Source of the DNA: Macrostomum lignano
Taxonomy: Eukaryota
Assembly: GCA_002269645.1 (NCBI GenBank)
Contig: NIVC01001124.1
Coordinates: forward strand, 186,001-250,000
Reading direction: 5' to 3'
DNA: 64,000 bases
Part shown: positions 43,440-43,832 of the stretch, piece after piece
How the letters are laid out: every line of letters starts with the position of its first letter
Position numbering within the stretch: position 1 is the stretch's first letter
Notes under the pieces: model-generated
The model's database searches: none
The model's input: the letters and a program-made list of their open reading frames with translations, nothing else
Told to the model about the DNA's origin: nothing
Program-made: the position numbers and the translations under genes

Positions 43440-43832
43440 ATGGCTCAAAAGCTCGTCCAGCATCTTGCTTTGATGCAGCTGCTGCTTCTGCTGCTCCTGC
43501 TGCACAGCGGCGGCGGCGGCTGTAGCAGCGCCGGCCTCGATCTCGACGCCGGCCTTGAGACAGAGGACGACAGCGCTGCAGTCGTCGGCCTCGAGACCGA
43601 CAAGAGATGTGAGGCTTTGCCTGTCTAGCTCGTATCAAATTGACATTGAAATAAACTTAATTGACATAATTGACACTAACTGACATCGGCAGACATGCAC
43701 ACCGGCCTGTCCTACTGCACCAGGCTGTGCCACTACAACTTCGGCCGGCACGCCAGATGCCGCGGCTATTTCAATTCGGTCAGCCGCGGCTGCGACTGCG
43801 TCTGCGCCGCGTTCAACGGCTGGGGCCGTTGA
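43440..43832 (+). CDS. Secreted cysteine-rich peptide precursor (102 aa; exons 43440-43608, 43693-43832): signal peptide, acidic propeptide, KR, 6-Cys mature peptide, C-terminal GR
   Basis: Donor T|GTGAG, CTAAC branch-like motif and CAG acceptor give an 84-nt phase-1 intron. GC3-rich codons; AATAAA at 43953 and 43964. Confidence 0.85.

Follow-up and report, generated by a model that had tools for sequence, protein, structure and literature searches.

A two-exon gene of Macrostomum lignano encoding a secreted six-cysteine peptide with a possible CS-alpha-beta-like fold

Invertebrate defensins with the cysteine-stabilised alpha-beta (CS-alpha-beta) fold carry the canonical cysteine array C-x4-15-C-x2-H-C-x6-9-G-x-C-x4-9-C-x-C, and in arthropods and molluscs the mature peptide is typically encoded on one unsplit exon with a phase-1 intron upstream (PMC6435467). 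CS-alpha-beta scaffolds act as toxins as well as defensins, one published CS-alpha-beta peptide (ASABF-6Cys-alpha) does without the cysteine of the N-loop, and a long hairpin has been described for mytilin B (PMC5116183). Here we analyse a stretch of 64,000 nucleotides (nt) from the flatworm Macrostomum lignano (assembly GCA_002269645.1, contig NIVC01001124.1, positions 186,001 to 250,000 of the forward strand). We refer to this whole stretch as the window, and all coordinates are those of the window unless another sequence is named. At 43440-43832 of its plus strand lies the expressed two-exon gene BOX15_Mlig002610 (Mlig002610 in the following), which encodes a prepropeptide of 102 amino acids (aa). 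We lean slightly towards reading its product as a lineage-restricted, non-canonical CS-alpha-beta-like secreted cationic peptide that probably serves host defence.

The reading frame opens with the ATG at 43440 and, if left unspliced, ends with a stop at 43628. Joining 43608 to 43693 gives a coding sequence of 309 nt and the 102-aa product within a gene span of 393 nt. The coding part of exon 1 (43440..43608, plus strand, 169 nt) is identical to the GenBank gene model and its last base is the first base of the Tyr57 codon. Exon 2 (coding part 43693..43832, plus strand) encodes the entire cysteine-rich domain Y57-W100, followed by G101-R102 and a TGA stop. The intron (43609..43692, plus strand, 84 nt, phase 1) begins with the donor GTGAGG at 43609 and ends at 43692 with the acceptor ...GGCAG, which is canonical though pyrimidine-poor; a CTAAC-like branch site lies near its 3' end. 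It interrupts the Tyr codon between T and AC, one base past the codons for the Lys-Arg (KR) site. The exons have a GC content of 64-65% (0.83 at third codon positions, GC3) and the intron one of 38%. A motif scan returned a TATA-like sequence, TATTTAAA (43338..43345, plus strand), about 95 nt upstream of the ATG as a candidate core promoter, and two AATAAA motifs (43953..43969, plus strand; at 43953 and 43964) some 120-135 nt past the stop as candidate polyadenylation signals. An initial annotation, made from the letters of the window alone, had proposed this gene model, splice junction and product, the intron right after KR, and promoter-like and polyA motifs; the model and the product were reproduced exactly from the window sequence and the GenBank gene model, and motifs of both kinds and the intron are present.

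It had also called the gene hidden, which it is not. The identical 102-aa protein is present in GenBank as PAA64764.1, PAA65225.1 and PAA71963.1 ('hypothetical protein BOX15_Mlig002610g1/g3 [Macrostomum lignano]'), the gene is likewise annotated in WormBase ParaSite, and the same protein in UniRef (UniRef100_A0A267EUX9) bears the automatic name 'Invertebrate defensins family profile domain-containing protein'. Irvine et al. (2023) listed it in their file S5 as flatworm antimicrobial peptide (AMP)-like peptide no. 504, SignalP-positive and positive in silico with 8 of 11 AMP predictors (72.7%); it was then dropped from their pipeline as 'Ungrouped' and never synthesised (PMC10414684). What is already public thus comprises the gene with its splice model, the product's secretory nature, the 'AMP-like' flag and the defensin-profile name given by UniProt. 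The GenBank annotation was made solely from RNA-seq, by genome-guided assembly with StringTie/TACO, mapped de novo transcripts and TransDecoder open reading frames (ORFs) (PMC5730564), and the existence of the gene model therefore implies a spliced transcript. The initial annotation had made the gene depend on such a transcript, and the RNA-seq-derived model supplies it indirectly.

The protein is annotated on three contigs of GCA_002269645.1, with a gene span of 393 nt on each; in our sequences L001 and L002, which carry the other two copies, the gene lies at 10001-10393. Such near-identical copies are in keeping with the duplication on a large scale that is known for the sequenced line DV1 (PMC5730564). 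The flanks of the three copies are about 98-99% identical and the 393-nt gene, including the intron, is 100% identical across all of them. In the few kb around the copies we counted about 0.6-1% mismatches plus indels, and hence about 2-4 differences would be expected per 393 nt by chance. Their complete absence is a weak hint at constraint or gene conversion, and it is not specific to coding positions.

The precursor is laid out as follows. Residues 1-26 (43440..43517, plus strand) form a signal peptide, SignalP 4.1 positive, with the predicted secreted part starting at G27 (PMC10414684 file S5), which bears out the signal peptide of the initial annotation. The propiece, residues 27-56 (43518..43607, plus strand), ends in the dibasic pair K55-R56, where cleavage would take place. 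Its residues 32-56 have a net charge of -6, and a seventh cysteine, C28, falls within it. The mature part is cationic, as had been proposed, with a computed charge of +4 and an isoelectric point (pI) of 8.9. The 44-mer has a computed mass of 5084.7 Da as the reduced free acid, and about 5077.7 Da would be expected for its amide with three disulfides. Its six cysteines at residues 65, 69, 79, 90, 92 and 94 give the spacing C-x3-C-x9-C-x10-C-x-C-x-C, exactly as in the initial annotation. The sequence closes with G-R-stop, and the C-terminal Gly-Arg (43824..43829, plus strand) is a possible amidation signal that would yield a Trp-amide under the general rules of processing by carboxypeptidase and peptidylglycine alpha-amidating monooxygenase (PAM).

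We found one paralogue, BOX15_Mlig034330g1-3 (Mlig034330 in the following; 90 aa), which was spotted in the S5 table of PMC10414684 by the shared word CDCVC. BLASTP aligns the two proteins with 47 bits (E 1e-13, 36% identity) over the signal peptide, a GGG, the KR site and the cysteine domain. In this alignment the cysteine frame C-x3-C-x9-C-x10-C-x-C-x-C is identical, and the invariant residues are K55, R56, Y57, H59, T60, Y64, C65, R67, C69, F73, G74, A77, C79, G81, Y82, N84 and C90-D-C-V-C94. Within the propiece KR alone is conserved. The gene of the paralogue (5001-5501 of our sequence L003, contig NIVC01000440.1) also has two exons, and its 228-nt phase-1 intron (L003 5146-5373) lies in the same Tyr codon. 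Across the 41 gap-free codons of the cysteine domain the identity amounts to 0.56 at first, 0.66 at second and 0.44 at third codon positions, and the ratio of nonsynonymous to synonymous substitutions (dN/dS, NG86) is about 0.24 for the mature domain, with dS saturated. The conserved cysteines, KR and intron position together with this dN/dS indicate that the gene arrangement is more than chance. The two sequences make up a two-gene family that evolves under purifying selection and is, to date, confined to M. lignano. We did not encounter this family, with its fixed non-canonical six-cysteine frame and conserved phase-1 intron, as a recognised one in the literature searched, nor any remark there that it would run counter to the published absence of CS-alpha-beta peptides from flatworms (PMC10414684).

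The mature peptide of Mlig034330 is cationic as well (charge +3, pI 8.7). GC3 is 0.54 in this gene compared to 0.83 in Mlig002610, and the motif scan returned no TATA-like equivalent upstream of it. C28, the acidic propiece and the G-R tail are absent from the paralogue and are thus not family features. The paralogue occurs in three allelic or duplicated variants (P0012-P0014), which differ by I/T inside CxxxC (C-I-R-R-C versus C-T-R-R-C) and at two propiece residues. P0001, P0012 and P0014 are called 'Invertebrate defensins family profile domain-containing protein' in UniRef, which points indirectly to a match with the PROSITE profile PS51378; variant P0013 is named just 'Uncharacterized protein' despite a cysteine domain identical to that of P0014.

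To delimit the family we searched several collections. With the precursor as query, phmmer was run exhaustively over 1.84 billion representative proteins and returned the query as its sole match; the paralogue went unseen there because its score is too low for a database of that size. The query was again the sole match in a word-indexed search of 5.8 billion proteins, and a profile search with both paralogues returned just these two clusters. Scans by tblastn and regular expression that covered the window and the flanks of L001-L003 revealed no further copy. The single match of a metagenome scan, at 714-827 of sequence L004 (UOUW01000816.1, bioreactor), was rejected as spurious: it is a high-GC bacterial contig in which 'SCDCVCAAY', by chance alike to the most conserved word of the family, is read in a frame that lacks the cysteine framework, close to a plausible opposite-strand ORF (608-793) whose end lies just upstream of it.

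We ran AlphaFold2 on the 44-mer as a single sequence, free of any alignment that might bias it. The model has a mean predicted local distance difference test score (pLDDT) of 75, with a helix at residues 4-17 and strands at 22-28 and 33-39 (mature numbering), and it places CxxxC in the helix and CxCxC in the second strand. As modelled, the helix and long beta-hairpin are compatible with a CS-alpha-beta fold lacking the usual N-terminal cysteine. The strands are joined by a four-residue turn, so that C23 comes to lie opposite C38, with C34 and C36 on the same side as C38. From this arrangement we infer the pairing C9-C34, C13-C36 (the cysteine-stabilised-helix motif) and C23-C38, which holds to the extent that the model does.

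Like the invertebrate CS-alpha-beta defensins (Phormia defensin A, MGD-1; PS51378, PF01097), Mlig002610 encodes a secreted prepropeptide, and its mature domain is small and cationic and sits on one exon after a phase-1 intron. Both paralogues show this defensin-type structure, with an unsplit mature exon and the phase-1 intron upstream. The cysteine-stabilised-helix motif CxxxC...CxC can be read directly from the sequence. As in defensin A, CxxxC lies in a helix (here, like the hairpin, a predicted one), nine residues lead to the next cysteine, x-G follows, and the hairpin carries CxC, even in the form 'CVC'. The gamma-core C-x9-C-x-G is present in both paralogues, and the spacing C-x3-C-x9-C-x-G is exactly that of insect defensin A. 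Other features set the peptide apart. Neither paralogue has, in its mature domain, a cysteine ahead of CxxxC, and the third CS-alpha-beta disulfide (from an N-terminal Cys to the first hairpin strand, C2-C6 in the reference array) is not possible; against the invertebrate defensins it is the canonical C1-C4 bond that cannot form. Mlig002610 also has an extra cysteine beside CxC (CxCxC), an inter-strand loop of x10 instead of x4-9, no conserved His before the second cysteine and no G-x-C.

The mytilins (mytilin B, PDB 2EEM; PF10690) share with Mlig002610 the arrangement CxxxC...C-(10-11 residues)-CxCxC, a long beta-hairpin (modelled in our case), a cationic character and a local G-Y-[FY]-x-S-V after the cysteine of strand 1. 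They differ by their eight cysteines in the arrangement C-x3-C-x3-C-x4-C-x11-C-x-C-x-C-x2-C and by a mature peptide that directly follows the signal peptide and precedes a C-terminal acidic extension, whereas Mlig002610 has an N-terminal propiece. The mytilin B sequence used agrees with PDB 2EEM, and ten mytilins were gathered in total, each of them PF10690. BLASTP of Mlig002610 against mytilin B aligned GYFNSV with GYYVSV alone (E 0.19). The mytilin hidden Markov model (HMM) gave -0.4 bits, a score matched by 21% of the Cys-preserving shuffles, and hhalign a probability of 0.6%. The likeness to mussel mytilins that the initial annotation noted is therefore statistically undetectable. On array, profile scores and precursor layout we reject the mytilins as the family of this peptide and keep them as a resemblance of pattern.

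A precedent for the missing cysteine is ASABF-6Cys-alpha from Ascaris, a six-cysteine peptide of CS-alpha-beta type that also lacks the N-terminal cysteine and whose third disulfide must therefore be rewired (PMC5116183). Compared by its description, it keeps the reference-array cysteines C3-C6, C8 and C9, whereas our peptide has CxxxC, one strand cysteine and CxCxC. The scorpion long-chain sodium-channel toxins (Css2, PDB 2LJM/2LI7) belong to the CS-alpha-beta superfamily scaffold and share YC.R.C.Q.[FY]G in the helix region at a non-significant E of 0.14; they are much longer, at 60-70 aa, contain eight cysteines, possess an N-terminal strand and have loops of another architecture. The initial annotation had remarked that the spacing fits no family it could name. 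In these comparisons the canonical pattern does not apply and the Pfam, PDB and profile matches are all non-significant.

The mechanism that would follow from a CS-alpha-beta-like host-defence peptide can be outlined in a few steps. The signal peptide (about residues 1-26) is predicted to send the precursor into the secretory pathway and to be removed. Cleavage by a proprotein convertase probably takes place behind the conserved K55-R56 and would release the domain encoded by exon 2, a cationic peptide of 44-46 residues (+4, pI about 8.9) with six cysteines. Oxidative folding would then most likely lead to a three-disulfide helix-hairpin with the helix (about 4-17) packed on the hairpin (22-28/33-39). 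In this fold the two helix cysteines (CxxxC) would form bonds with two of the three CxCxC cysteines, as the cysteine-stabilised helix of the cis-defensin / scorpion-toxin-like superfamily, and a cross-strand staple between the first-strand cysteine and the last cysteine of CxCxC would replace the usual bond of the N-terminal cysteine. In the Mlig002610 copy alone, going by general processing rules, the Arg would be trimmed and the Trp possibly amidated via the Gly. Judging by charge, scaffold and predictor votes, the product would most likely act as a secreted cationic antimicrobial in a free-living flatworm that lives among sediment bacteria. A bolder version of this proposal, in which Mlig002610 and Mlig034330 are the first genuine cis-defensins (CS-alpha-beta) of the Platyhelminthes, with the N-terminal tether replaced by a cross-strand staple and with a Trp-amide in one member, is one that we put forward tentatively and that falls a little short of being probable.

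The following results weigh against a CS-alpha-beta-like defence peptide. No Pfam family was found at E<=10 for Mlig002610 or for the family. Searches of the PDB with phmmer and hmmsearch returned nothing significant; the best match of the family profile was the scorpion beta-toxin Css2 (E 0.14). Hhalign gave a probability of 0.1-0.7% against a defensin profile that recovers 26 solved PDB defensins, and the defensin HMM score of -4.9 bits was no better than the scores of Cys-preserving shuffles. The regular expression for the canonical array matches defensin A and MGD-1 and neither of the paralogues; the departures are the missing cysteine N-terminal of CxxxC in the mature part, the missing His and G-x-C, and the x10 loop. 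The fold model is based on one sequence, and Foldseek found nothing in the PDB at E<=0.001 (best E 1.6; at rank 3 the plant defensin AtD90, with a non-significant E of 3.5 and a TM-score of 0.37). As for the precursor, ProP 1.0 called no cleavage at the KR of Mlig002610 in the published helminth AMP screen (PMC10414684 file S5), the propiece of Mlig034330 has a net charge of +2 compared to -6 in Mlig002610, and the paralogue ends ...SNYP without a G-R tail. A survey of 33 flatworm species by BLAST and HMM came to the conclusion that CS-alpha-beta peptides are not encoded by flatworms, an absence that it called surprising, and four earlier 'S. mansoni CS-alpha-beta' expressed sequence tags had no genomic support (PMC10414684). 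Finally, the paper texts and supplements searched hold no tissue expression, induction or activity data for Mlig002610; the literature searched contains no mention of it in running text and no discussion of defensins in Macrostomum.

Several proposals of the initial annotation consequently stand in part. Its processing at KR agrees with the conservation of KR in the paralogue and disagrees with the ProP call. Its acidic propiece exists in Mlig002610 and is not conserved. The G-R-stop behind its amidated C-terminus is present in the sequence; the tail is absent from the paralogue and the amidation itself would be a matter of general rules. Its defensin-like reading draws on the PROSITE-based UniProt name, the motifs, the phase-1 intron and the helix-hairpin model, and is opposed by the failure of the canonical pattern and of the profile and fold searches.

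Host defence has its strongest competitor in the view that the secreted, cysteine-rich peptide plays a part outside immunity, perhaps on the same disulfide scaffold, as a hormone- or neuropeptide-like signal, a seminal-fluid or gland secretion, or a toxin-like channel ligand. KR and the C-terminal G-R recall the precursors of amidated signalling peptides, although the amidation tail, being absent from the paralogue, does not define the family. The toxin-like variant gains from the double use of CS-alpha-beta scaffolds and from the fact that the best PDB match of the family profile, non-significant as it is, is a scorpion sodium-channel toxin; against it, M. lignano is a diatom grazer and is not known to have a venom. 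The literature searched for Mlig002610 gives no sign of immune induction. Both peptides are nevertheless cationic, 8 of the 11 AMP predictors were positive for Mlig002610 (PMC10414684), and neither Pfam nor phmmer disclosed homology to a known hormone or toxin family. Overall we consider a non-immune role rather unlikely.

The likeness to defensins could also be convergent, with the family representing another disulfide-rich fold, a lineage-specific invention unrelated to the cis-defensins. Short cysteine motifs such as CxxxC and CxC arise easily, there is no significant match by sequence, profile or fold, and the peptide lacks the N-terminal cysteine that defines that fold's third bond and departs from the canonical pattern. 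The family was moreover found in M. lignano alone among the 1.8-5.8 billion proteins searched. What speaks for a defensin relationship is the agreement of several features: going by the UniProt names, both paralogues match the invertebrate-defensin profile of PROSITE, insect defensin A has an equal C-x3-C-x9-C-x-G spacing, the gene architecture resembles that of defensins in placing a phase-1 intron ahead of the mature exon, and the unbiased single-sequence model shows helix and hairpin in the expected order. Convergence of this kind seems to us clearly improbable.

That there is no functional gene at all, only fortuitous ORFs and splice sites or a transcript-assembly artefact, might be suspected in a very repeat-rich window, where a 24-nt minisatellite begins 275 nt past the stop, and with support at the level of the annotation instead of RNA-seq reads viewed directly, but we regard it as extremely improbable given an annotation derived from transcripts (PMC5730564), a paralogue that at 36% identity keeps the cysteines, KR and intron position with a dN/dS of about 0.24, the strong contrast in composition between exons and intron, the high GC3, and a gene that shows no difference among the three assembly copies, with flanks that diverge by 1-2%.

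The surroundings of the gene in the window are dominated by repeats. Two minisatellites lie downstream of the peptide gene, the first at 44107-45243 with 47 copies of the 24-nt unit CAGCTCTCTGCGGTTTGAAGGCAA and the second at 45807-47338 with 62 copies of a 25-nt unit. Their copy numbers differ among the three assembly copies, and both yield spurious minus-strand ORFs of up to 426 aa. Summed up, about 20 kb of the 64 kb (about one third) consist of tandem arrays with units of 15-41 nt, for example at 4627-5522, 10590-11828, 12292-13352, 15959-16974, 17768-19547, 37518-39483 and 47909-48993. Simple repeats comprise (TAGA)n at 3327-3775 and 60002-60497 and (AGT)n at 8235-8667. The strong local swings of the GC skew in the window are due to the tandem arrays, and the array content fits the repeat-rich genome of M. 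lignano (PMC5730564).

Three other coding features were identified in the window. An ORF of 552 aa at 29923-31581 (plus strand) contains a reverse transcriptase domain (RVT_1, E 2.8e-11), and ORFs at 29233-29877 and 31458-32516 adjoin it. It probably represents a retrotransposon that inserted about 12 kb upstream of the peptide gene. A protein kinase exon at 52126-52761 (minus strand; Pkinase, E 1e-31) corresponds to the 547-aa kinase gene that is annotated downstream of the peptide gene in sequence L001 (16083-19864, minus strand). The ORF with a fascin domain at 6077-6784 (plus strand, E 1.7e-14) is probably an exon of a gene for an actin-bundling protein. A search with Rfam gave no RNA family in the window.

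Taken by itself the finding is modest and concerns one annotated, uncharacterised gene for a small secreted peptide in a repeat-rich genome. Its weight depends on the fold. If the CS-alpha-beta-like fold is confirmed, the 2023 claim that flatworms have no CS-alpha-beta peptides needs revision; both paralogues are in that study's own supplementary list, where they were not recognised as defensin-like (PMC10414684). M. lignano is transgenic and amenable to RNA interference, so that the function of the peptides is directly testable. If Mlig002610 and Mlig034330 are indeed cis-defensins, small and far-diverged cysteine-rich effectors would call for profile- or structure-aware searches, and a variant disulfide framework would be added to the defensin scaffold. 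The scaffold itself would then be ancestral in Spiralia, and its divergence in the flatworms would have gone too far for BLAST and HMM searches to trace.

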